Part shown: piece by piece, positions 15,259 through 64,000 of the stretch | Layout of the letters: each line of letters opens with the position of its first letter | How positions within the stretch are numbered: the stretch's first letter is position 1 | Source of the DNA: Epiperipatus broadwayi | Taxonomy: Eukaryota; Animalia; Onychophora | Length of the DNA: 64,000 bases | Assembly: GCA_028023455.1 (NCBI GenBank) | Contig: JAQFVV010000003.1 | Coordinates: 26,908,001-26,972,000 of the forward strand | Direction of reading: 5' to 3' | Translations under genes and position numbers: made by a program | Notes under the pieces: generated by a model | Told to the model about the DNA's origin: nothing | Database searches by the model: none | What the model saw: only the letters and a program-made list of their open reading frames with translations

Positions 15259-16670
15259 TAATAACAAAATAAATAGTGATGGTATATTATGCTGGAAAGA
15301 TTATAATTTATTTACAATTACAGCTGCTTTCGACCTGGGCAGGTTTATATAAATAAAATTTATAAGTTAAATAATTTAAATATACTATTTACATGATAAT
15401 GTAATGCATGGATCTTTTTTGTTTATTGTGTTAATTTTATTTGCAGAAAACTATGCCTCTTTATATATTTTTTTGTTGATTATTGTGCTCAGTACAAACA
15501 GCTTTAATATTATAATATTATCATTTATTTTCTTTATTACTTTTACAATGCTTCATATAATTCCAACCCACTACTGATGCAATAGTGAGTTGTAATTATA
15601 TGAAGCACTGTAAAAGTAATAAAGAAAGTAAATGATATTAATATTATATGGATTTGCCAATGCAATAAGAAAGAATTTTAATATTAACTGGACTGAAATT
15701 GTGGCCAAATTCAATTTCATGTTCCAAAAATATAGATTTAATGTTGGGGTCTGTTTTAGCATATATATATATATAGTTGTGATGTGCTAATCTTGTAGTG
15801 CAAATGGGACAAGACTCACTATAGTAAATTGTATTATATATTGGTCCATTGCATTTAATTTTATAAACTATTTGAAGAGTTTAGTCTGGAGATAATTTGT
15901 CTTTAATATTGTTCAACATTTGATTATGATTAGGTGGTGTTATAAAACTAATATTGAATTCGTTGGAGCAAATTGTTTTAATCTTTTTAGATATACATGG
16001 ATCAGCTTTCTTTTTATACCATGTATATCTAAAAAGATGAAAACAATCTGCTCAAATGAATTCAATATTAGTTTTAGAACACTAAGATGAAAACAATTTG
16101 CTCCAATGAATTCAATATTAGTTTAATAACACCACCTAATCATAATCAAATGTTGAACAATATTAAAGACAAATTATCTCCAGACTAAACTCTTCAAATA
16201 GTTTATAAAATTAAATGCAATGAACCAACATGTAATGCAATTTACTATAGTGAGTCTCATGCCAATTGCACTACAAGATTAGCACATCACAACTATATAT
16301 ATATGTATAAACTTGCTAAAACAGACCATAATATTAAATCTATAATTTTGGAACATGAAATCAATTTTGGCCACAATTCCAATTCTCTTAATATTAAAGC
16401 TGTTTGCACTGAGTACCATGATTGAAAATTAAAAATAAAGAGGCGTGATTTATTGCAAATAACATCAATGCAATAAACAAGAAAGACTCATGCATTGCAT
16501 TATCATGTAAATGGTTTATTTAAATTATTTAACTTACAAATTCTATTTATATAAGTCTATAATTAGTTCTATGAATATGACCGACCTGGTCGAAAACAGA
16601 GCTAAACTGTAATTGTAAATAAATTATAATCTTTCTAGCATAGTGTACAATCACTATTTATTTTATTATA
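15259..16670. mobile_element. Penelope-like element 3' fragment (GIY-YIG) as a head-to-head inverted duplication
   Basis: Arms of about 650-750 bp are inverted around about 16010. The plus arm from 16087 translates as ...IKDKLSPD*TLQIVYKIKCNEPTCNAIYYSESHANCTTRLAHH...KSIILEHEINFGH, matching the PLE GIY-YIG pattern (VYKI.C..C...Y.GET...TR..EH...S.I.EH). An HHR-like tail GACC/GGTC-GAAA lies at 16579-16595. Confidence 0.85.
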
Positions 16671-28100: not shown

Positions 28101-28789
28101 ATCATTGAATTATATAAATATTATTAAATAATAATCAATATAATAGTAATTAGCTATTATGTACAATCTAGCTATTATGTACAATCTTTAAATCCGCAGA
28201 AGTACTTTGGTTAAAATATACATAGCCAGCTTACAATCAAATTAGATAATTATCTAATTGTTGTTTAATAAATGGATGTCTACTAGATACTCTTCTCTTT
28301 CATCTGTTTCTCTATTTAAAGAAGGTATAGAGGTTTTGCAAAAAACTATTTTACTTTTTACTAAATATTCTTTCTCAAACTCAAATATATATAAAAAATA
28401 TCTAATTTCATTTAACATGTTTCTTCATTTAAGATTTAATTTTATTAATGATTGCATGAAAGTGAAACAATTTAAAGGGCGAAATGTATTTTTAGAAATA
28501 TGATATTTCCAAAGAACTTTACTATTCAAATCTAATAACATTTTCGCAGTAACATCAAATGGAAGTATTTCGTGTGTTTCAATAATCACTGACATTTGTT
28601 ATCAAAAATCATTATTCTTTAGTAACAAAAGAGTTCTTCATTATTTAATACAATTGCATGATTTGAAATTTATCTAAAAACTTTCTTTTAATAATAGTTA
28701 AAATGTCAGAAAGTTAAACACATTTTCAAAAGTCAAATCATTTTTTAAAAAAAAAGATATTATATATAATAATGCTTTGGAGATAAAAA

Positions 28790-29478: not shown

Positions 29479-30033
29479 AAAACAGGCAAAACTCTCCATA
29501 CAGTAGTGCCACTCAGTGCAAGCCAGAGTAATCAATGGATACCAGATGGTTTGTGCATAAAATTCCTATCTAGTGCCTACTCATCCAATATCCCCAGACT
29601 AGTTTCTGGCTTATGGCCTTCATTAGTGAGGAGCCTTGGACTAAGAACACTGCACTTAGATCTTTAGCCCAGACTAGTTTCTGGCTTGTAGCCTTCATCA
29701 GTGAGAAGCCTTGGATCTGAGAGCCCTGCACTTAGATTATAAGATCTAGGTGCAGTGCTCTCAGATCCAAGGCTCTTTACTCTCGAAGGCTAGGATCTAG
29801 GTGCAGTGCTCTCAGATGTAAGTCTCCTCACTGATGAAGACCACAAGATTGAAACTAGTCTTGGAATATTGGATGAGTAGGCACTAGATAGGGATTTTGT
29901 GCACAAGTCTTCTGGCATCCATTGATTACTCTGGCTTGCACTGAGTGGCACTACTGTATGGAGAGTTTTTCCTGTTTTAATAACAGTTATGAGCATGCAT
30001 AAGAAATGGTGATCATGTTATGTTTGATGGTTT
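29479..30033. mobile_element. Retrozyme-like HHR repeat, locus A (minus arm then plus arm; 3 HHR copies)
   Basis: HHR copies lie at 29591-29632 (-), 29666-29706 (-) and 29825-29866 (+). The inversion centre is at about 29740. The candidate 13-bp TSD AAG(C/T)TATAATATT is at 29466-29478 and 30034-30046. Confidence 0.88.
29666..29706 (-). ncRNA. Type I hammerhead ribozyme motif, intact core, 4-bp stem I
   Basis: The minus strand reads CTCA-CTGATGA-A-GGC-TACAA-GCC-A-GAAAC-TA-GTC/TGGG. Confidence 0.7.
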
Positions 30034-31258
30034 AAGTTATAATATTCTGGTTTGTTTATATTCATTTCAAGTTGTGATCCAAACATATTTGAATTTAAAT
30101 AATATAATAATAACCTTATAAGAGTTGTCAAGTCTCAAGAATATTGTTAACTTTTATCATATGGATATAGAAAGATAAATAAATGTTTACATATTTAGTG
30201 GGGGGGAAATTCAAATTTAAATCTGAGAATTTTTAAAAGCTGTGTTATTGTCTTAAATTTGTTCTGTGAAGAAATAAATTAGGCAACTATTGGCATTATA
30301 TTTTATAAACTAAATTAAGCCATAACCATGTAGGATGTATAAGTCATTTCATTTGTAAAAGTGGTCAATATGAATAAATTGTATCATATACAAGTTGCCA
30401 AAAGGGTCATATCCATGTGGTTCAAAGCAGAATCATATTTGAATGTTCTGGATCATTGATTATGTGGCACATGTGAGACTTATGAAATGTTTAATCTATA
30501 AGAGTTTTTTTCCTCAGTAATCCTAAAGTTATATACAGGTGGGACCAAAAGTGTGATCTTAATTTATATTAACTACTGTGAGAGATATAATATTTGAAAA
30601 ATGAGATTTTATTGATATTCTTCTAGCTCATGTGATTTTGGTTATTTTGATAATGCTATGTGGTAGAAGAAAATAATATAGACTTCAGAGACTCAGATTA
30701 TTCTTACTGAAATCTCACTTTGAGATACTATCACAATTGCAATGAAAATATTAATTGTAAAAGAAACTATTGATTTTTAGAGTAAATAAAAATTATTTCT
30801 GATACTCCAACAGTAGTTGATTTATAGTCTTTAATAATGAAAGTTAAATTTGAGATGGCAATTTTTATTAAATTTTTTTTTGAAAGCTATCATTAACTCT
30901 GTGTTTAATAATTCTAGTCTTTACCAACAAGTTTTTGAAAGACTCAAGATTATCAATTAGTAATTGATGGTTTCCAGACGGCATCAAAATACATAATTCA
31001 ATATATACATATATATGGATGTAATAAAACCAAATGATAAATCACGTGACCTAAATAGCTTGTAATTATCAATATGTAAAAAAGAACAAAATAAAATAAG
31101 CTTGTTTAGAAATATTTTTTCTTTATTATTTATAGATGTGTATATATGAATGCAGTAGTTCTCACATATTTGCAATATATAATTCCAAGCCTATACCAAA
31201 ATTCATGGATAGTACTGAATCATATAGCATTTTTAACATACTCAATATATATATTTAA

Positions 31259-36577: not shown

Positions 36578-37187
36578 ACTAGTCTGGGGATATTGGATGA
36601 GTAGGCACTAGATAGGAATTTTATGCACAAGCCTTCTGGCATCCATTGATTACTCTGGTTGGCACTGAGTGGCACTACTGTATGGAGAATTTTGCCTGTT
36701 TTAATAACAGTAATGTGCTAGCATAAGAAATAGTGATCATGTGATGTTTAGTGGTTTAACACCAATCCTGCATAATAGGATAGTGGTGTCTATGGTTGTT
36801 AAAGAGCCAAAGACACCTAAATGTATGGGTATTGAATTGGGTTCAGACCCATATGACTATATAAGCTATTGAACTTAGATTGAAAATATTATTGTGTTTT
36901 GAATTTTATTCTCATAGTTTTGTAGTTAAGTAGAGATAAAAGGTGGCTGCTGGAGAGTTGCATTAGATCCTAAGATCTAGGTGCAGTGCTCTCAGATTTA
37001 AAGCTCACTGATGAAGGCCACAAGCCAGAAACTAGTCTGGTGATATTGGATGAGTAGGCACTAGATAGGGATTTTATGCACAAGCCTTCTGACATCCATT
37101 GATTACTCTGAGTGGCACTACGTATGGAGAGTTTTGCCTGTTTTAATAACAGTAATGTGCTAACCTAAGAAATAGTGATCATGTGAT
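36578..37187 (+). mobile_element. Retrozyme-like HHR repeat, locus B (about 1.3 tandem monomers, 453-nt period)
   Basis: It begins with ACTAGTC/TGGGGA (the 3' half of the HHR), and the next HHR is at 37002-37043. The distance between predicted cleavage sites is 36584 to 37037 = 453 nt. There is a direct terminal redundancy of about 150 nt. Confidence 0.9.
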
Positions 37188-37346
37188 ATAATTCCATTGT
37201 TACTGGAGCTTTTTTCTTTTTCATAGATTTAATTGCATATCTCATTTCTTCATATAAGATGTTCTGCAATTCAGTACATGTATAGAATACTTCAGAACCT
37301 TTCATAATATAATCTCTGTTTTTAGTAATAGTTACATCTTTTTTTT

Positions 37347-37862
37347 AAACCACTAAATATCACATGATCACCATCACTTATGCTAGCACATAACTGTTAC
37401 TAAACAGGTGAAACTCTTCATACAGTAGTGCCATCCTATGCCAACCAGAGTAATCAATGGATGCCAGAAGGTTTGTGCATAAAATCCCCATCAAGTGCCT
37501 ACTCATCCAATATCCCCAAAATGTATGGGTGCTGAACTGAGTTCTGACCCATATGACTATATAAGCTTATGACTATATTGAGCTTAGATTGAAAATATTG
37601 TTTTCAATTTCATTCTCATAGTTTTGTAGTTAAGTAGAGATAAAAGATGGCTAATGGAGGGTTGCATTAGATCCTAAGATCTAGGTGCAGTCCTCTCAGA
37701 TCCAAGGCTCCTCACTGACAAAGGCCACAAGCCAGAAACTACTCTGGGGATATTGGATGAGTAGGCACTAGATGGGTATTTTATGCACAAGCCTTCTGGC
37801 ATCCATTGATTACTCTGGTTGGCATAGGGTGACCCTACTGTATGGAGAGTTTTGCCTGTTTA
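37347..37862. mobile_element. Retrozyme-like HHR repeat, locus C (minus arm 37347-37518, plus arm 37519-37862)
   Basis: The plus-arm HHR at 37709-37750 is mutated (CTGACAA, CTC). The candidate 9-bp TSD ATCTTTTTT is at 37336-37344 and 37863-37871. Confidence 0.88.
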
Positions 37863-37931: not shown

Positions 37932-38160
37932 TATTCATATATATTGCTTATAATAACTCCTCTTATATACGCTTTAATGTAAAAAAAATTTTAATGGAAC
38001 TTTAGTTTCGTGACCAGAAATCTTCATCAGAGCATTCTCAATTTCAAGAATGCTCTGATGAAGACTATTGGATAGTCAAAACTGTTAGGAAAATAAAGAA
38101 GCTTTATTAAAAAAAAAATTTGCATTAAAGTGTATATGAGAGGAGTTATTATAAGCAATA
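37932..38160. mobile_element. Fold-back of about 230 bp with hammerhead motifs in both arms; PLE-terminus-like
   Basis: Central hairpin cttcatcagagcattct/agaatgctctgatgaag. Plus 38051-38090 reads TGCT-CTGATGA-A-GACTAT-TGG-ATAGTC-AAAAC-T-GTT/AGGA. The outer arms tattgcttatataataactcctct and agaggagttattataagcaata match. Confidence 0.72.
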
Positions 38161-39215: not shown

Positions 39216-40471
39216 AAATGGTATCTTGGATCTGCAATCAGAGGATTCTTAGTACCCTCTTGCTTTCAACTATCAACCACTGCCTTGATTGGCAACTTTA
39301 CAGCCTTCTGGAAATAAAGGTCATAATTTAATTTTATCTCTCATGATTTTAAATATCTATTTTTAAAAATTTCATTTACACACACATTCTATCTTAAAGA
39401 AAACATCGGATATTTCATTTGAAAACTATCAGACAACTAAGAAGAAAGATTTTAGATAAAAATAAATAATGTACAGTATAAATAATTAAAAAGATGTATG
39501 ATAACACAAGAGGGTGCTTTCCGGGGGGTGGGGGTGAAATAAGAATTTAGATTATAGAAGTAATTGGCATCACCATTGAGAGAAATTATTGGATGTTTAT
39601 TTTTCAACTGTTGAAAATAAACAGGATAAAGAAATTTTAATATAAAGAGAGTTAAAAAATAGATTTTTTTTTAAATTGTGAGGATAGGATAGTAGATTAC
39701 TAAAACAGTTTTTATTAAAATGAGATGGGGGGGGGGGGGGATCAGGTATAGAAAAATTATTTCATAATGTTATTTTTAACAGTTTTGTAGGAAGGGACTG
39801 GTTAACTTGGCTAACAGTTTTTCTGTCCATATAACTAACTCCATTTAAAAAGCAAATATTTCACATCAAAAGGAAAAATATAATATGCATTCTGAAACTT
39901 CTGTATTATTTTTTATTAAATGGATGTAACTGCTTTGGGTGCTTAGAAAATTCTTAACATAAAATAGAAAGATGCATCAAATATTTATTACTATGAAAAG
40001 CTATAATACCATTATAGCATGTTTTCAAGTAGTCAATTATCCAGTAATTGCAATGAGAATGTAGTCACCATTCAAATCATAATTAGATATTTTTAGAGAG
40101 ATTGGTCTACTTTTTACACTGAATAGCAACCATTAATTTTCAGTTACCTGAAAAGAGTGGTGACATTTGTTCATAGGTTTATTTACAGTCTGACTTGTGA
40201 CTTAATTTCGTATTTAATCTCTGTGTTAATAATGTTTAATAAGATATGTAAAAATCATAAGATAGAAATTACCTCTACTTTTTGGCATATTGTAAGATTG
40301 ATTTGAACATATTTAATTATGATTGTGGGTTTACAAAATTAATACATTAAAAAAAAAAGAGATAAGCAAAACATCTGTAAATATAAGAAGTTATATTGCT
40401 ACTCTAGCATGTTTTTAAGTGTTCTAATTTCCAGATATCTGAAAAACTTATATATTACATGAAACAGTTAT

Positions 40472-41440
40472 CACATGATCACATCTCCAATACTAGCACA
40501 TAATTGTTTATAAACAAAGCAAAGCAAAACTCCATATAATAGTGCCACCTGTGCTAAACAGAGTAATCAATGGATGCCAGAAGGCTTGTGCATACAATCC
40601 CTATCTAATGCTTATTCATCCAATAGTTTCTGGCTTGTGGCCTTCATCAGTGAGGAGCTTTGGATCTGAGAGCACTGCATCTAGATCTTAGGATCTAATG
40701 CAACCCTCTAGCAACCACCTTTTATCTCTACTTAACTACAAAACCATGAGCATGAAATTGAAAACACAAAAAATATTTTCAATCTAAGCTCAATAGCTTA
40801 TATAATCATATGGGTCTGAACTCAGTTCAGCACCCATACATTTTGGTGTCTTTGGCTCTTTTACAACCATAGTCACCACTACCTTATTAGGCAGGATTGG
40901 TGTTAAACAAGCAATCATCACGTGATCACATCTCCAATACTGGCACTACTATATGGAGTTTTGCTTTGCTTTGTTTATAAACAATTATGTGCTAGTATTG
41001 GAGATGTGAGCATGTGATGCTTGCTGGTTTAACACCAATCCTGCCTAATAGGGTAGTGGTGGCTATGGTTGTTAAAGAGCCAAAGACACCAAAATGTATG
41101 GGTGCTGAACTGAGTTCAGACCCATATGACTATATAAGCTATTGAACTTAGATTGAAAATATTTTTTGTTTTCCAATTTCATGGTTTTGTAGTTAAGTAG
41201 AGATAAAAGGTAGTTGTTAGAGGGTTGCATTAGATCCTAAGATCTAGATGCAGTGCTCTCAGATCCAAAGCTCCTCACTGATGAAGGCCACAAGCCAGAA
41301 ACTAGTCTGGGGATATTGGATGAGTAAGCATTAGATAGGGATTTTATGCACAAGCCTTCTGGCATCCATTGATTACTCTGTTTAGCACAGGTGGCACTAC
41401 TATATGGAGTTTTGCTTTGTTTATGAAACAGTTATGTGCT
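40472..41440. mobile_element. Retrozyme-like HHR repeat, locus D (about 1 kb palindrome of two roughly full monomers)
   Basis: The minus arm is 40472-40940 and the plus arm 40941-41440, with a 451-nt period (40941 vs 41392). The candidate 13-bp TSD ATGAAACAGTTAT is at 40459-40471 and 41423-41435. Confidence 0.92.
41272..41313 (+). ncRNA. Type I minimal hammerhead ribozyme, best-preserved copy; predicted cleavage after C41307
   Basis: The motif reads TCCTCA (stem I 5') CTGATGA A GGC CACAA GCC A GAAAC TA GTC / TGGGGA (stem I 3'). Stem I has 6 bp including one G-U pair, and stem III is the loopless palindrome ACTAGT. The base of stem II has a non-canonical A.A apposition. Confidence 0.85.
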
Positions 41441-53100: not shown

Positions 53101-54099
53101 AAAGATGTATAAATACTTGAATATTATATAATTTTATTTTTCAATTTTCAATTCTTTTTATAAATACATGTTTATCACTTGCACCCATCCAAAGAATTCT
53201 TTACGATTGCTTTTTTTTTTTTATAATTATAAACAATCATATCACCATCATTTGTTTATCAAAATAACGATAAGCTTTATCTTACAAATATTAATAATTC
53301 AGTTATAATTCCTTAGCATACATTAAAATAAAATTTCCAAATATTATGTTTATACAATTTTAAATCATTAAGAATGTTATCCCAAAAGTTATTAATCTAA
53401 TATTCATGGATCATTTGTGACCCATAATGCCTTATCAAATGATTTGTGTCTTCATTATTGATTTGGCATTAAACATTTTCATTTTCTCTGATCCACCCTA
53501 AATTTTAATATCATGCATGTGATACTTTGCTTAAGTAAATGAAAAATTCCACTGTGCTTGTTTGGGTTGTCATTTTAACTTGTTTCTTATCGGGTTTTTT
53601 CTCTCCATACTATCAGCACAAATATGTCATATGAAAACTATATTTTATATCTGAATTATTTTATATTATTGTTTGTGAATTACTATCAAATTTTTGCAAT
53701 ATTATATATGAGTTCGAGTTTCTCATCTTGAATATAGCTGGAAAATGGTTTTTTGATGTAAAATTTTTGGCTGTAAATAATAAGTTACTACTGTGACCAA
53801 ACAATAAAAGATCATTGATGTCTGTATATTTTTCATTAAAGATAAATATGGTAGTATTCATAAATATCCATTACTTTTTTTACCTGTAGTAAATATAAAA
53901 TAATATGCGATACTCTTTTTACCAACCAATAATATAAAAAAATACTCTTCATCAGTAGTGAACATGCTCACAAGTGCATCATATTCCCTTCACTCATGAT
54001 GTAAGCAATTCCTGTTTTTGTTTGTTTTTACAATTAATATATAATTACTTATCACCATTACACAAATTTACTGAGATTTTCTTTATAGCTAGAGAACTC

Positions 54100-54500
54100 G
54101 TTCACTAAATAATATTGGATGATTAGCAGGACTGATTTTTGATTGACTTTCTGAAAATAGGTCTTCGGTTTGCTTGGAATTAATTATCTGACGAAAAAAA
54201 TCCAAACTGCATTCCAGGTTGAATCACGTCACAAGTATGCGCTACATCACAACAAGATACGCCATACCATTTTTTTTATTAACTTTTAAAAAAAAAATAT
54301 TTTAACATCTCGCATTCAGTTGTTTCATTAATAATTACGATATAATTTGTCAGCCAAAAATAAAACAAACTCAACTCGTAAATAAAAAATAAAAATGATT
54401 AGAAAAACAAATAAACAAAAAAAAATTAGGCAGTATTACGTAAAGTTAAAAATATTAAGAAAACAATTAGTTACGGAGGTCACAAGTTATTTCAATATTA
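54100..54500. promoter_or_regulatory. CpG-retaining region, possible promoter
   Basis: Local CpG enrichment, a TCACGTCA (CRE/E-box-like) site at about 54225 and a TCAGTT initiator-like motif at about 54316. No associated gene was identified. Confidence 0.3.
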
Positions 54501-54987
54501 GGAAAAAACAAAACAGTAATGTCAACATTTCAAGTTATCTAGTTTTTATTAACAAAGATTTTTAAAAAAGTTGTCCTTTAAATGGCCTTACTTCATTTAA
54601 AACTGCTTAAGGCTTTCAAATATCCAAAATTATATCACCATACTTGATCAACTGCCACTATTTTTTATATAATTAGAAATTGATAAGTTGCCAAATTAAT
54701 TATTCAAATTCATTATAATAAATTGTATAGTTAATATTAAAAAAATGATATTAATAAATTACATTTCTTTATTATGCACCTAAATAAAATTATTAAATTA
54801 TTTAAAGTAAAACACGACTGTTTATTAATTTAAAAATTATTTATAAATGGTGAAAAATGAACTTCATTGTTAAAAGAAAGGAATGATATTTTATAATTAA
54901 TAATAAAATTTACATTTGTTTATTTCTTTATTTTCAAGTACGAGTCATTACTATAAAAACAAAAATACAAAACCGATAAAAAAAAAG

Positions 54988-57900
54988 TGATGTGCACTGT
55001 GGCTTCTCCTTTATTGGAGTCAGGAATCTCTCAGCTACTATGCCCAGAGAAACCTGTTAGACACCTTCCATTTCTCACTCTGTCTTTCCCATATTCTTTT
55101 CTAACCTGCTCCATCTCATTTCTACAACATAATCTTTGTCAACTAAATCCCCCGTATCTTTGCCCAAAGCCAGCATAAAAACCAAGAACCCACTTTCTGT
55201 ATAATCACTGTTTATATTTATTTCCCCTCAACTTCATTATTTGCACCCTTTTTGCTTGTAGGCATTACATTCAATTAACAGATGCCTAATATTTTCCATG
55301 CCTTTCTTATATAATTTGCAGACTAAATCACCCATATTTTTCCATTTATGTGCATATTACCTTATTGCTTAACATCTTGCTTGAGCCATAAACAGTAAAT
55401 TGATCTCCTTGCTATTATCATAAATTAACTTGCACCCAATATTTCTGTTTACTTTTATATATATATTTAAACTCTTTTTACTCTCCATACTATTTCTCTA
55501 TCTCTCCAACTTCCTATTTTTTATTAATACATCTATTCTATCCCATTCCTTGTCACTATAATACTCAATAATTCTCCTAACACAATCATCCCACTTTTTG
55601 TATAAGTATACTGATATAAAGTCTTTATCCAAATCTTCTGCATACCATACCACCTTTCTCACCCATCTTGTTGTGTGTCCTTTACTCATAACACAATTAA
55701 AAACTATTTTGGTTATTCTCTTATCATCCATAAATTTCAATCTACTGAACATTTTCATTTTGCTTTTTGCATCTTTCACATAAAAACTAGACCATCCCAT
55801 TTCTCCTTGAATTCCAATGACACATCTGCATCTAATGCATGCTTTCTCACTTTTCTTTGTGCTTTTTCTAAGTAAACTAACATATTTTTACTAACACATA
55901 ACACATCATTAACATAAGTTAACCCTGCTACTGCCACTTCCTTCTGTACAATTCTAACTACATATTTATTATATGAAAACACTGTTATTTCTTTATCAGT
56001 CCCTTTCTTTTTTTTGCTTCATTTATCAATTTTTTCTCCCATTCATACAAGCAATTTCTCTGACTATGAATCCCAAATAATTATACCTATTCATCACATT
56101 TAACTTTATATCCCCCAATAAAAATTATTTTTCTCTTCTCTTTCCCAGCATTTATCATCATTACTTTTGATTTTCCTTCACTAAATTTAATCCCCATCTC
56201 TTTATCCACTCTTGCACATGTCTTTAATATAACTTTCATATCTTCCTCACTTTCTGTGCACAAGAAGATATCAACAGTAACCCTACTTTCTGTGCATAAA
56301 AGACCTGATAATATATATACTCTCTTGCCACCTATTAATGATATCTCTACTATCCTTCTAGTCTTTCTATTGCTCTTTCCATTTCTCTCAAATATAACAA
56401 AAACAAAATAGGTGACATACAGCATTCTTGCCTTAGTCCCACTCCATTTTTAACTTGAACTGATTTTATTTCCTAATTGATATGTATAGTAAGTATTTTT
56501 ATACAATCTCTTAATAAGATCCACTAAAGCTCCATTCCCAAATTTTTTTAAACCTACCCATAATTTATTTCTATTTACTCTATCATATGCCTTTTTCATC
56601 TCTATAAAGACCATATATAAGTTTACTTGTATTCTTATGCACATCTATAAGTTGTGTGACTACAAATAAACTATCTCTTATACATCTATCTTATTAAAAA
56701 CCTCCTTGCATTTCTTCCAATATATTATTTTTTCCAGCCACTTTGTGACCCTTCCAGCCACCATATATGCAAAAACTTTATATAAGATTGCTGTTATTGC
56801 TATCAGTCTATAATTGTTTACCCTTCTATAATCCTTATGCTTTCCTTTAAATAATAGCCTTATTCTTGTATTATTCCAACTAGCTGGAAAATCTCTCTTC
56901 TGTGCCATCTTATTAAAACATGATAATAGATTTAATTTTGTTCTATGTCCTAAATTCATTATCATTTCTGCTGCCCATCCATCTAAACCTCTTGTCTTTC
57001 CACTTTTCAATTTCTTCCTTGCTTCATTCAATTCATTTCTGTAAACCTGATATTTCCATTACTATATGCTTTCATGTTTGTTATCACTCTGTCCTTCACA
57101 TCTAACATCTTTTCTATACCCACTATATACTTATTTAAGATTGTCACTAATTCTTTTCTAGAGATATACTCTATTTCCTCAACATCTAGTAATACTATTT
57201 CTCTCGCCCATGCATTCCTTTCTTTAATATATTTCCAAAATTTTTTACTCCTATCTTTCCCACTTTTATTAAAGGCCTCCAACAATTTATTATATAATTT
57301 CATTCTCTCTATATAATTATCTATTTTAGCCAACTTCTTTTTTTAAAATACTTTCCCCATTTAATATAAACATCTTTTTTTATTTATTCTCTGCATGCTT
57401 TTTTCCTCTTTTTTACACTCTTCTCAATATTCTTACCTAAAATCCTATTTGTCACTTTTTCTACATCACCATGGCACTCCTTATATTCATCCCCAACAAA
57501 CTCTTCCATGATTTCTTCTACTTTTATTTTTATATTTTTTTAATTTATTTTTATCATTCATTCTCCATCCACATCTTTCACTATTCTTTCTACTTTTATT
57601 TCTATTTTCCATCACATTACTAACCATTTCTATTAATAAAGAAATTAAGATCACTATTACATACTCTATCTTCATTATCAAAAACTTTTAATTTTCCATA
57701 CTTTTATTTATTCCCTCTTTATCTACTAATATATAATCTATTGTGTGAAATATGTTATTTCAGAGACTATCCATTATTGTTATCCAAGTCATAAATTTCT
57801 TCAATATGCCATTCATATCCTTTATAACCATTATTTTCTTTTCTTTTTTTCAAAACTCTGTATATCCTTAACTAGACATTCATATATGCTACTGTTCCAC

Positions 57901-59700
57901 TCCATTATAGTTTGATTATCTCCAATGTCTATATATACCATAGCCATCATTCATTATTGTCTTCCTAACCTTATCTCAAACCACAAATATTCTTAACAAT
58001 AGTATTTGTATATTTTTTGACATAACTCCTATACCATCATCCTTTTTTTCTTTTCTATTTATATTCTACCATGTCAAGTCTTTTAGTGTAGGTTCTTCTT
58101 CTCTTAGATGTGATTTCCACTACAGTTAATACCCCAAGCTCTTTATTTTTAACTACTTTATTTAATTCCAGCCACTTTTTTGATCTTTACCATCTTGCAT
58201 ATTCAAATATTCAATTTTAACAATTTCTTCTTTTCTTACTACACTTTTATGAATTCTTTTGACTTTTTCTTCTCTACTATATTTGTAAGTAACTTGCTTA
58301 CCACTAATTTTATAGACCCATTCCCTCTTCACATCTACATTTATATCTTAATCAGCTTCTCTTTGTTTATTTCTTACATCTCATCCATTCTTCTTTTTGA
58401 TAATACTGCAATTTAAAACCCTATCCTCTTTATAAGTTTTCCAAACTATACTATTTTTTATAAATCAAACTTCCTAATACTTCACTTCCTTGTTTTTCTA
58501 AGTGCAATCCATCTTTACTATACAACTTTCTCTTGCTAATGGAAAAATCACACACATTCACAAACATAACATTATTTCTCTCACATAATTTTTTCAATCT
58601 CTCATTTATAGAATATGCTCTATCTAACATATACCTATTGTAAAATTTTGGTAATAATCCAAATATTCCTACTTTTCTTTTAATCTTATTCAAATTACTA
58701 ATCAATTCTATGTACTTTTCCATTATTCTCTATGATGGCTCTGACAAATTATTTATACCATAACATAAACATCTCTACTCCTTTATTTCTTCACCTTATC
58801 TGTAGTATCCCTAATTCTAGTTCCAGGCAAACATATTCTTACATACTTATTTTTGTTTTCCTTTGCAATTATAACTCCACATGCTTTAATTAGTGAGTCT
58901 CCCATCAATACTGACTCATTGTTTATTTTCCCTACTTGATCCATGACGTTTTCCCTTTCATCTTCTGGATTTCATTATCTAGTTCTTCTTTAATATTTCT
59001 ATTCATTAATTCCTTAATCTTCTCACACTTCATCTCTAATGATTTTAATTTTGCTTCTACATCCTTTATCTTTTCCTCTGTCTTACTTATTTTTTGGCTA
59101 ACCATCTTCTATTGCACTACTTATTTTGTCATGCATATCTCTTGTCACTACACTAAAAACATACTCTATTCTATCCTCCTCAACTATATTTTGCTCCATT
59201 TATCCTGACTTTTACTTTAAACTATCTATACTTAGAAACCATTTTTTCATTCTTTTATCACATTTACATATGAGTTACATAACCACACACCTGTTACATT
59301 CTTCCTAGTCTTATTTAAGCATTTCAAATGATAAACCTCATCACATATGGTATACTCTACCACGGCATGCCTAATTTCCTTCTGACCATAATATATATAT
59401 TGTGGGATACAAATGCAATCTATATTTCTTATTTTTCCAAGTCCATTCTATATTTAAATTTATGCTTTCTCTACTACTCTTCAAATCCCTTTATACAAAA
59501 AGAGAAAAACTTTTTTTTAAAAGGTGATTGATAAATATGTGTTTCCTAACCTTATACCTCAAACATTTATCTTCTTTATCAAATAAATCACTCTCTTTCT
59601 TAAATTGAAAAATTCTTTAGTAACAGACTAAAAAAATCAACTAATCTTATTTACAACTTAGTTTTAAAGCCTCCTTGCAATAAACACACACACACACAAA
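54988..59700 (-). mobile_element. Decayed near-full-length LINE: esterase ORF1, APE endonuclease and RT (RTEX- or CR1/L2-like)
   Basis: ORF1 has SGNH/GDSL motifs VLMGDSLIK (58894-58902 = GDS) and LYSKDGLHL. ORF2 fragments are KSGKTRGLDG, SWNNTRIRLLFKGK, NNYRLIAITAILYKVF, FIEMKKAYDRVNRNKLW and GLRQ. An AATAAA lies near the 3' end (about 55010). Confidence 0.9.
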
Positions 59701-59789
59701 AAAATATAGTTTTTCTTTTTATATTAAAACGGTATAACAAACCACTTTCTAAACCTTAGCAATATTATTCCCAATTTTTTCAAATCCAA

Positions 59790-59794
<5 letters not shown>

Positions 59795-59838
<44 letters not shown>
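59795..59838. repeat. (TC)22 microsatellite
   Basis: Direct reading. Confidence 0.95.
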
Positions 59839-59841
<3 letters not shown>

Positions 59842-59939
59842 ACTCCAATTTTTTTTTTCATGTCCACCCACTAAGCAAAAATTTTTTGCAGCAACAAATT
59901 TTTTTCAGATGATACTCAAAAAAAATATAAACTTTAACT

Positions 59940-60247
59940 CAGAGGTCCCCAACCCTATGCCCATAGGCACCATGATGCCCGCAGACCATTTTATGTATGC
60001 CCACTGCTATCCGAACACTATAAAAAATTATTTATCTGATACAAATAAATTTAATTTTTAAGATTTCTTATAAATTATTGTATTATATTGTAATCAAATT
60101 GTAGGTCATACTATACTTTTACAGCATAAATGAGTCTAGTATTAGCAATATCCAACTATAAATTTACATTGAAAAAATAAATGGTGCCCACCACATGGCC
60201 AGTATTATGGAATGTGCTCTTAAGTGCAAAAAGGTTGGGGACCTCTG
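59940..60247. mobile_element. hAT (Charlie-like) MITE, 308 bp
   Basis: 15-bp TIRs CAGAGGTCCCCAACC and GGTTGGGGACCTCTG. Identical 8-bp TSD CTTTAACT at 59932-59939 and 60248-60255. Confidence 0.93.
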
Positions 60248-60310: not shown

Positions 60311-60775
60311 AAATAAAAGTACCAAACTAATGCCACCAAGTGCAAGCTTTTGTAATCAATGAATGCAGAAAGGTTTGTGCATAAAATTTCATCTAGTGCC
60401 TACTCATCCAATATCTCCAGACTAGTTTCTAGCTTGTGGTTTTCATCATTGAGGAGCCTTGGATTTGAGGGCATTAGTTTATAGTTAACCAAATAGGTAA
60501 AATGTGGCTGGTAGAGAGTTTCATTAGATCCTATAATCTAGGTGTAGTGCTCTTAAATTCAAGGCTCCTCACTGATAAAAGCCATAAGCTAGAAACTATT
60601 TGGAGATGTTGGATGAGTAGGCACTAGATAGGGATTTTGTGCACAAACCTTCCTGTACTCGTTGATTATAAAAGTTTGCACTTGGTGGCACTATTATATA
60701 GAAAGTTTGGTACTCTTATTAACAGCATGTGTAAGCATATGAAATGATGATCGTGTGATGTTTTGATGGTTTTAT
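60311..60775. mobile_element. Retrozyme-like HHR repeat, locus E (diverged subfamily; minus arm then plus arm)
   Basis: HHR copies at 60414-60455 (-, C3 to A) and 60566-60606 (+, G8 to A, cleavage triplet lost). It shares ggatgagtaggcactagatagggattttgtgcacaa with the other loci. Confidence 0.85.
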
Positions 60776-63350: not shown

Positions 63351-64000
63351 ATGAAGAGTTTTACCTCAGTGTAATATTCTTTTACTTGGGGTGAGAACAC
63401 TATCTTAGATTTCTTTTTTAATAGACTTATAAGTTGCCTATGGAAAGCCCATAATAATCCAAGTTTTCAGGGACTAATAAATTACCTTCAATTTTTTTTG
63501 ATACATCTTCTAATTTTTTGGGTGGAATGATCAGAGCATCTTTAAATAGGATGAACACTTTAATCAGTAAAATTGATATTAGAAATTTTTTTTAACTAAA
63601 TTATAAAAATAATGAAAATCATGACCTGAATATCCTCAAGAGATAAATAAGATCAATACTTTAATCAGTAAAATTGTTATTAACAAAACTTTTTAAACTA
63701 AATTAAAAAGTAATAGAACTTATGGATTGAATGTCTTCCAGAGAATAAAACTTCTCCAAATCTACATCATATTATTATAATCATTTTTTGCTTGTTTTTG
63801 TCACCCACATATCAACAGCGGGTTAATTCGAATCTTTACTTTCCAACTAATAATAGCTAAACACTCATTTACTGATCAATACTGGATATGTCAACTATTA
63901 AGATTTTTTTAAAAATATTACTTACTATAAAATATATAAAGCTTTATCATAAAATATAATTTACTGTTTTATTTATTAAGATTCATATTTTTATAGTACT

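Follow-up and report, generated by a model that had tools for sequence, protein, structure and literature searches.

Within the window, by which we mean the whole 64,000-nt stretch of Epiperipatus broadwayi DNA analysed here, a 951-bp insertion occupies positions 40472-41422 (locus D) inside 13-bp target-site duplications, the sequence ATGAAACAGTTAT at 40459-40471 recurring as an exact direct repeat at 41423-41435. The insertion is built of two head-to-head arms of a ~450-nt non-coding unit, about 1.05 units apiece. The left arm (40472-40946, minus strand, ~1.05 units), delimited by blastn to the monomer and by inverted repeats, meets the left edge of the insertion with its sense 3' end, which lies at unit position ~76-78 and is the 'long' end, and its inner end is at unit position ~49. 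The right arm (40941-41422, plus strand, ~1.07 units) meets the right edge with its sense 3' end at unit position ~32, the 'short' end. The arms are 92% identical to each other, and their alignments have a 6-nt overlap in common at the inner junction (40941-40946), a microhomology. The initial annotation had read this locus as a tandem array with a period of 451 nt, but that period depends on ~31 nt of second-unit overlap only, TRF found no ~451-nt tandem array in the window, and the locus is an inverted pair. Between 29 and 44 kb we found no ORF of at least 70 aa, barring one 81-aa ORF at 28258, and ARAGORN reported no tRNA-like module. Locus D is a decayed insertion in an AT-rich intergenic stretch, which is an ordinary result for the window itself.

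A complete type I hammerhead motif survives in the right arm alone (41263-41322, plus strand), recognised by sequence, pattern, covariance model and folds. Distal stem I (41263-68 pairing with 41317-22) and proximal stem I (UCCUCA at 41272-77 pairing with UGGGGA at 41308-13) comprise 6 bp each around an AGC/UA internal loop, and they enclose CUGAUGA (41278-84), stem II (41285-97, A-GGC-CACAA-GCC-A), GAAAC (41298-302), a UA loop (41303-04) and GUC (41305-07), with cleavage predicted after the GUC, at 41307/41308. The conserved core (C3 U4 G5 A6 N7 G8 A9, G12 A13 A14, A15.1-U16.1 and H17) is complete at 41278-41307, the two-part stem I and the stem II hairpin GGC-CACAA-GCC give the type I topology, and both stems form in the predicted MFE structure of the unit RNA. 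Young copies of the family read CUGACGA and differ from 41278-84 at N7 only, the one free position of the core and its only common polymorphism in the family. The sense unit RNA as a whole has an MFE of -163.7 kcal/mol (z -6.45 against shuffles; z -3.2 for the antisense).

Two features of this ribozyme depart from the standard form. The base of helix II is an A.A mismatch in place of the standard G10.1-C11.1 pair, a pair that is usual there without being obligatory, and helix III has only an A-U and a C-G pair with a 2-nt loop. Monomeric activity may be poor because of the A.A at the helix II base together with the 2-bp helix III and its 2-nt loop. The axolotl HHR_Amex2 hammerhead has U.U at the base of helix II and still cleaves (PMC7229834). 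The ACUAGU of helix III is self-complementary, and cofolding of two motifs is predicted to make an intermolecular helix (-36.2 versus 2 x -16.4 kcal/mol); on these folding models, the weak palindromic helix III would probably render the ribozyme dimer-dependent.

A strict hammerhead pattern matched seven times in the window, against 0.15 expected, and a count of seven was reached in none of 100 shuffles. Nine copies of the family motif are recognisable, the number given by the initial annotation, but the core bases, stem II and cleavage site are all intact in only three of them, at 29672-29701(-), 37008-37037(+) and 41278-41307(+). The left-arm hammerhead of locus D (40621-40650, minus strand; alignment row WIN_40596-) is defective: CUGAUGA, stem II and GAAAC are intact, and an 11-nt deletion takes out G16.2-U16.1-C17 plus the 3' strand of stem I. 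Because just one intact ribozyme remains, locus D is no longer able to release unit RNA.

The unit, which lacks an ORF, was recovered by blastn and repeat search at all five loci where it had been reported. Locus A (29479-30037), an older insertion, is also head-to-head and is complex at its centre, its short end on the left and its long end on the right, inside a 9-bp target-site duplication (TATAATATT, 29470-78 and 30038-46). It holds three motif copies: one with G5A (29588-29635, minus strand), the intact minus-strand copy named above, and one with a broken stem II (29822-29869, plus strand). Locus B (36578-37187, plus strand), which carries the intact motif at 37008-37037, is the sole simple direct array among the window's loci. 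Here the 453-nt spacing noted earlier held, in a direct 1.3-unit copy that, through 5' truncation, begins 7 nt before the cleavage site and has a 3' end of the long type; neither an inverted arm nor a target-site duplication was found at this locus. Locus C (37345-37862) is again a head-to-head insertion, with a minus arm at 37345-37518 and a plus arm at 37516-37862, flanked by the 9-bp duplication ATCTTTTTT (37336-44 and 37863-71). The sense 5' end of its minus arm coincides with the predicted cleavage site, and its plus-arm hammerhead is mutated (G8A, G16.2C). Locus E (60352-60772), likewise head-to-head, is the oldest copy at 78-85% identity, and both of its motif copies are inactivated, by C3A at 60411-60458 (minus strand) and by G8A at 60563-60609 (plus strand).

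The unit measures 451-458 nt, with ~39% GC. The high copy number suspected from five loci in the window was borne out: the family's 30-nt hammerhead box has 38,024 exact matches in the 5.6-Gb genome assembly, a control has none, and many copies are ~99% alike. Family sequence was also found in 14 sequencing runs (9 organism labels, 5 studies), in all cases as contigs and in none recorded as RNA. In one run (X8), remnants resembling a small-RNA 5' adapter adjoin family sequence, which is a hint only. Searching the literature for the motif strings in exact form returned no match.

The initial annotation had proposed Rfam hammerhead models as a check, with the lack of a match counting against a hammerhead. 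Rfam gave no hammerhead match in the window at the gathering score (RF00163), and at E<=10 none in 29-42 kb or in the 101 nt around the motif, the sole Rfam hits being matches to miRNA models, which we rejected as chance hits on foldback hairpins. A sister family in the same genome, Fam2 (unit 410-428 nt, loci L059-L066), passes Rfam Hammerhead_1 (RF00163) at 34-40 bits, though, and a covariance model (R1) trained on Fam2 alone finds eight copies in the window, the best of them at 41269-41316 with 32.9 bits and E 8.9e-8; the left-arm motif of locus D was not found by this model. The two families are only ~52% identical overall. They have in common the stem I strands UCCUCA/UGGGGA, a core identical save N7, a GAAAC-NN-GUC segment with a palindromic hexamer (ACCGGU in Fam2, ACUAGU here), head-to-head arrays and blocks elsewhere in the unit. 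They differ in that stem II of Fam2 is GACC/GGUC with the standard G10.1-C11.1 where the window family has A.A, that N7 is A in Fam2, and that the stem III loop switches from CG to UA with the palindrome kept. Alignment of the two stems II reveals two compensatory swaps, A-U to G-C and C-G to G-C. A core kept save N7, compensatory change in stem II and a kept palindrome, at ~52% identity, would be difficult to account for if the ribozyme fold were not under selection. The pair of families also offers a natural test of how much weakening of helix II and helix III a genomic hammerhead tolerates.

Elsewhere in the genome, insertions of the family run from a minus arm into a plus arm across an inner junction that varies in position. 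This order was seen at nine of nine young loci and at most of the 19 older ones, and among the first 100 exact motif sites of contig C1, neighbours within 1 kb were in (-,+) order ten times and in (+,-) order never. Arms range from 23 to 1,596 nt, up to 3.5 units, with whole-unit reiteration, and target-site duplications measure 9-18 nt, most of them 13-14. We examined the outer ends in 22 duplication-flanked insertions, namely 20 loci with convincing 11-18 nt duplications plus loci A and C of the window. In each of the 22, one end is short (unit position ~28-38) and the other is long (~67-90), a pattern with a chance of ~2^-22 were the ends independent, whereas one locus that has no duplication (L006) has two short ends. 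The interval between the short and long positions amounts to a one-sided 'tail' of ~40-55 nt, and a poly(A) or microsatellite tail is absent from both ends. At the other side of the arms, 7 of 35 unbiased 5' ends lie at, or at most 20 nt upstream of, the predicted cleavage site, against 1.6 expected for this range, which was chosen post hoc; arm 5' ends also cluster elsewhere, for example ~50-70 nt upstream of the cleavage site. Inner ends also gather near unit position 1, a cluster that we discarded as an ascertainment artefact of full-length queries.

The spread of metazoan retrozymes is generally attributed to enzymes borrowed from Penelope-like elements (PLEs), and the insertion footprint of this family matches that published for PLEs. 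In PLE insertions, partial tandems stand beside a 5'-truncated copy in inverted orientation, with a tail of 30-40 bp on one side only (Craig et al. 2021, PMC8557442). Their enzyme cuts and extends both strands, and the tail is set by two neighbouring internal sites at which the RT starts (Frangieh et al. 2024, PMC11167929), a one-tail, two-start-site signature reported as unique to PLEs (PMC11167929). The family likewise joins a partial tandem to an adjacent inverted 5'-truncated copy with a tail at one end only, and points to internal RT starts at two nearby sites with both target strands as primers; it differs in encoding neither RT nor EN and in a somewhat longer tail (~40-55 nt versus 30-40 bp). 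The Penelope-like link put forward by the initial annotation is accordingly strengthened, by the head-to-head arms and by a one-sided tail of ~45 nt in every one of the 22 insertions. PLEs are also abundant in this genome, with at least 10,242 GIY-YIG candidates, and potentially active ones are present, as open frames of 800-901 aa with RVT_1 followed by GIY-YIG (45 and 39 bits in the 901-aa frames). A Pfam scan of entire PLE ORFs returned nothing, yet pieces of the same ORF match RVT_1 and GIY-YIG; our guess is that the composition (bias) filter acts on these K/N/I-rich proteins. Across a sample of 20 PLE loci, of which 12 are GIY-YIG loci and 8 are PLE regions of larger size, the unit showed no similarity attributable to a PLE: the only matches were neighbouring retrozyme fragments and one weak match of 64% (L047) that, unlike an expected pLTR, is not repeated downstream of the ORF. 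Nor did these 20 loci contain a canonical CUGANGA...GAAAC hammerhead that clearly belongs to the PLE.

Locus D is probably, judging by its sequence, one decayed insertion of a non-autonomous retroelement, non-coding and of very high copy number, that belongs with the metazoan non-LTR retrozymes and inserts by a predicted PLE route. On this route, an arm with at least two hammerheads would be transcribed, and the transcript, as its motif suggests, would cleave itself after GUC to unit-length RNA, which, as arms of up to 3.5 units suggest, would be circularised or stay multimeric. A putative Penelope-like RT/GIY-YIG enzyme would then cut both target strands ~13 bp apart and use both 3' ends as primers for cDNA, starting at two sites within the RNA that lie ~45 nt apart, and the two cDNAs would join at a variable point through microhomology. 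The expected product is a foldback flanked by a target-site duplication, its sense 3' ends facing away from each other, the one 'short' and the other 'long'. Of these steps the last two, cutting with priming and joining, have left a footprint that is visible in the DNA, and we infer that a Penelope-like enzyme lies behind it. It is a tentative but quite conceivable extension that, as the end rule would show, the two target strands are primed in vivo, genome-wide, at two internal start sites ~45 nt apart on a retrozyme RNA that is circular or multimeric. On the same reading, the surplus of arm 5' ends in the 20 nt before the cleavage site would be a DNA fossil, left either by cleavage or by the RT stopping at the ribozyme.

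The same data could come from a PLE-dependent, SINE-like element that kept its hammerhead for another reason, such as a fold recognised by a protein, and that spreads via linear read-through multimers without cleavage or circles. The A.A at the base of stem II, the minimal helix III and the lack of Rfam matches fit such an element, as do the findings that hammerhead cleavage is dispensable in vitro for insertion by a real PLE and that no RNA-seq reads end at that PLE's hammerhead site (PMC11167929). We nevertheless regard it as unlikely, given the core, compensated stem II and palindrome that two such divergent families have kept, the cleavage of axolotl retrozymes with U.U at the same position (PMC7229834) and, with the post hoc range in mind, the arm 5' ends at or just upstream of the cleavage site.

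Other origins would dispense with the Penelope-like enzyme or with RNA altogether. A LINE reverse transcriptase acting by classical twin priming would leave inverted 5' segments and target-site duplications as well, but neither end of the family's insertions has the poly(A) or microsatellite tail, and the ends start in two fixed zones, one of each per insertion, which is the signature reported for PLEs only; we hold a LINE origin to be very improbable. A structure made at the DNA level, whether a foldback/MITE transposon or a replication-error satellite in which the hammerhead-like string is incidental, is the explanation to which we give the least credence. Foldback elements do have long inverted repeats and flanking direct repeats, but a DNA transposon should show constant termini and target-site duplications of one set length, whereas inner junctions here are unlike in every locus, arms vary widely by reiteration of whole units, duplications vary in length and the orientation is always sense-outward. 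These observations already contradict it.

We assign the repeat family to the metazoan non-LTR retrozymes, an already known class. Its ~38,000 copies with an intact motif, together with the clean duplications and the strict end rule, make a large natural data set for reading an insertion mechanism from DNA. The repeats of metazoan retrozymes have no conserved motif from which a partner retrotransposon could be deduced, according to a 2020 review (PMC7761336), and a 2026 preprint argues for the retrozyme-Penelope link from phylogeny alone. If the two-start-site reading is true, it would provide insertion-footprint evidence tying metazoan retrozymes to Penelope-like enzymes.

Compared with known systems, the arrangement resembles L1 twin priming in its two cDNAs from the strands of a staggered break, its microhomology join and an inversion inside one target-site duplication, and is unlike it in having no poly(A). 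Both arms of the family carry the same sequence because each primer would begin at a set position inside a template that is circular or reiterated. The closest likeness is to the metazoan non-LTR retrozymes described by Cervera & de la Pena (2020, PMC7229834), whose unit of 150-450 bp has no LTR, PBS or PPT. The retrozyme-like reading of the initial annotation finds agreement in the non-coding unit, the type I hammerhead, the strong fold and duplications of 9-15 bp, and its remark on a long monomer in a unit at the top of that size range. Family and class alike have a non-coding unit with GC below 50% and one type I hammerhead, duplications of more than 4 bp, a predicted stable, self-paired RNA, tens of thousands of copies and co-occurring PLEs. 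In both, as in retrozymes of the newt and axolotl satellite 2 type (HHR_Amex1, HHR_Amex2), helix III is 1-2 bp with a palindromic loop, which would imply dimer-dependent cleavage, and the helix II base can be mismatched, by A.A in the family and by U.U in HHR_Amex2. The family differs in that its motif falls below the Rfam threshold and that it forms short head-to-head foldbacks of 0.1-3.5 units per arm, whereas metazoan retrozymes form long tandem arrays; RNA circles and cleavage are on record for the latter, and the family is known here from DNA.

Blastn with the monomer recovered the family at all five loci claimed by the initial annotation, but the tandem layout proposed for locus D (40459-41440) did not hold: the sequence itself, a repeat finder and blastn agree on an inverted pair with no tandem array, and TRF found no ~450-nt period throughout the window. 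The left arm (40472-40946, minus strand) is the reverse complement of the hammerhead-bearing unit and the right arm (40941-41422, plus strand) carries it in plus orientation, each arm spanning ~1.05 units and the two alignments sharing 6 nt (40941-40946). The 951-bp body is bounded by a duplication, ATGAAACAGTTAT, with identical copies at 40459-40471 and 41423-41435. Head-to-head pairs also make up locus A (29479-30037) and locus C (37345-37862), each with a 9-bp duplication, and locus E (about 60352-60772); locus B (36578-37187) is the only direct copy of the five, with 1.3 units at a spacing of 453 nt. Because the arms of locus D are 92% identical to each other and its plus arm is ~96% identical to young genomic copies, sequence divergence marks it as an old insertion, with a drift of ~4% in each arm.

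Across the 5.6 Gb assembly, first-look candidates numbered at least 3,189 for the locus D unit; for the locus B unit, candidates numbered at least 5,687 (92-94% identity). Full genomic copies from the locus D search have a 458-nt unit and are 95-97% identical to the query and ~99% identical to one another. The exact 30-nt hammerhead box CTGAYGAAGGCCACAAGCCAGAAACTAGTC occurs 38,024 times in the genome, and its reversed control 0 times; GC content of the window is 27%.

The layout of locus D, a minus arm followed by a plus arm with the sense 3' ends outward, was seen again in 28 further independent loci, among which the inner junction varies and arm lengths range from 23 to 1,596 nt. Any arm that exceeds one unit must have been copied from a multimeric or circular template. 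In 20 loci the duplications are convincing (11-18 nt, mostly 13-14), and all 20 have one outer end at unit position ~28-38 (short) and the other at ~67-90 (long), a rule that window loci A and C also obey. L006, which lacks a duplication, has two short ends. For close neighbours, the first 100 exact motif sites of contig C1 show the (-,+) order 10 times and the (+,-) order 0 times. The duplication is often similar to unit sequence at the short end, as in locus D, which suggests annealing-assisted priming.

For Penelope-like elements (PLEs), the published footprint combines partial tandems with a neighbouring inverted, 5'-truncated copy and a one-sided tail of 30-40 bp (PMC8557442), and this is, judged from the insertion sequences, the footprint of the present family. 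The pattern also fits the enzymology of one purified PLE protein, with which both strands are cut and extended and reverse transcription begins at two neighbouring positions inside the RNA, the tail being defined by the distance between them (PMC11167929). The geometry is consistent too: left-flank-primed cDNA would yield a left arm that is antisense on the top strand, and right-flank-primed cDNA would yield a sense right arm. PLEs are numerous in the genome, which has at least 10,242 GIY-YIG candidates, as well as tandem open frames of 901 aa in which GIY-YIG comes after RVT_1; two such frames at L045:3301-9138 (contig C12394) apparently form an intact PLE in partial tandem. In Pfam, the L045 protein had no match as a whole sequence, and pieces of it scored above cut-offs. 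No partner for the family emerged from 20 sampled PLE loci, in which no sequence common to the unit could be attributed to a PLE.

The initial annotation had counted nine hammerhead copies; nine are recognisable in the window, but only three are complete and six carry inactivating changes. In the right arm of locus D the motif (41263-41322, plus strand) retains all conserved bases, and its predicted cleavage site is 41307|41308. Its proximal stem I (UCCUCA/UGGGGA) leads through an AGC/UA internal loop to AUCCAA/UUGGAU, and stem II is GGC-CACAA-GCC with a flanking A.A mismatch. Helix III consists of just A-U and C-G pairs around UA, and the hexamer ACUAGU is therefore self-complementary; in a predicted cofold it lets two motif copies pair. 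A published retrozyme ribozyme with U.U at the stem II position where this family has A.A retains cleavage, weak in the monomer and efficient in the dimer (PMC7229834). The only common core polymorphism within the family is U/C at N7. The 458-nt young unit has only one CpG, formed by C7-G8 in the core of the ribozyme (L008:1849-1850; window 37719-37720), and in older copies it is changed to UG, as in locus D, which is harmless, or to CA, as at 37715-37721, which destroys G8. These changes look like methylation-driven decay, and the occasional CUGACAA copies likewise look like CpG decay.

A covariance-model miss had been named beforehand among the refuting outcomes, and Rfam hammerhead models indeed gave no match to the family at any threshold set; however, a covariance model trained only on 18 motifs of Fam2, a sister retrozyme family of the same genome, matched 8 copies in the window (best E 8.9e-8). 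Fam2 (unit 410-428 nt) itself passes the same Rfam model, RF00163, at 34-40 bits and is also head-to-head, with minus arms then plus arms in arrays on other contigs (L059:900-2800 and L066:600-2450). The two families are ~52% identical overall and have in common both stem I strands, all core bases but N7 and, in the rest of the unit, conserved blocks: a hairpin (CUGAAC...GUUCAG) and UCAUGUGA, the latter near the long-end start zone. From Fam2 to this family, two stem II pairs changed on both sides (A-U to G-C, C-G to G-C), G10.1-C11.1 was replaced by A.A, and the centre of the palindromic hexamer changed from CG to UA with self-complementarity kept. From these sequence comparisons we conclude that the motif is a genuine, selectively maintained hammerhead of the weak-helix-III type, with predicted activity.

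Sense unit RNA cut at the predicted site has a folding energy of -163.7 kcal/mol (shuffled sequences, -122 +/- 6.5; z -6.45), and the predicted fold includes hammerhead stems I and II; antisense RNA reaches a z of just -3.2. Leaving out the arm that led to each locus's retrieval, 7 of 35 arm 5' ends lie at the predicted cleavage site or up to 20 nt upstream (expected 1.6), an excess that is only suggestive of a trace of ribozyme cleavage, as the 20-nt range for the count was picked after the data were seen and further 5'-end clusters are present. Three of the seven, including the locus C minus arm, fall within 2 nt of the site. Another 7 of the 35 end ~50-70 nt upstream of it, near the palindromic hairpin UUAGAUCCUAAGAUCUAGAUGCA, a zone that may be a reverse-transcription pausing or template-switch site.

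Of the sequencing runs that contain the sequence, none is recorded as RNA and all are in the form of contigs. In a comparison of four of them, numerous diverged copies were present in runs with several different coded organism labels, depth was greatest where the unit carries the ribozyme, and joints of both the opposite-strand and the go-back type occurred in the contigs. These data show the family's presence in sample DNA (or RNA), not transcription. When run X8 was compared with L008:1501-1958, loose ends CAGTCCGACGATC stood directly before family sequence near L008:1609; because we read CAGTCCGACGATC as the last part of a widely used 5' adapter for small RNAs, X8 may be a small-RNA library with family-derived small RNAs.

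Elsewhere in the window, a separate ~215-bp near-perfect palindrome (37945-38160) has a hammerhead-like box (CUGAUGA-A-stem-GAAAC/AAAAC) in each arm, at 38005-38030 (minus strand) and 38055-38081 (plus strand). The palindrome is a member of an older family, for which first-look candidates number at least 1,461 (70-80% identity), and it probably represents a further short insertion of the head-to-head PLE type. GC skew is strongly negative (-0.35 to -0.60) across ~6 kb at 54001-60000; the minus strand there carries four ORFs of 100-117 aa (55498-57333), and 59795-59839 is a (TC)n tract. Two short tandem duplications unrelated to the family lie at 63543-63749 (101 nt x 2.0) and 16034-16132 (50 nt x 2.0).

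Retrozymes are described as tandem repeats in the literature consulted, and our literature search found neither a head-to-head, one-tail footprint described for them nor the hammerhead motif strings of this family. It has been stated that the mobilising element cannot be deduced from retrozyme sequences (PMC7761336), and a 2026 preprint argues PLE ancestry from phylogeny. The initial observation holds in part, and the retrozyme-like interpretation is supported. In the size and composition of its unit, the type of its ribozyme, the fold predicted for its RNA, its duplications and its copy number, the present element fits the metazoan non-LTR retrozymes, and its insertions carry the PLE footprint.
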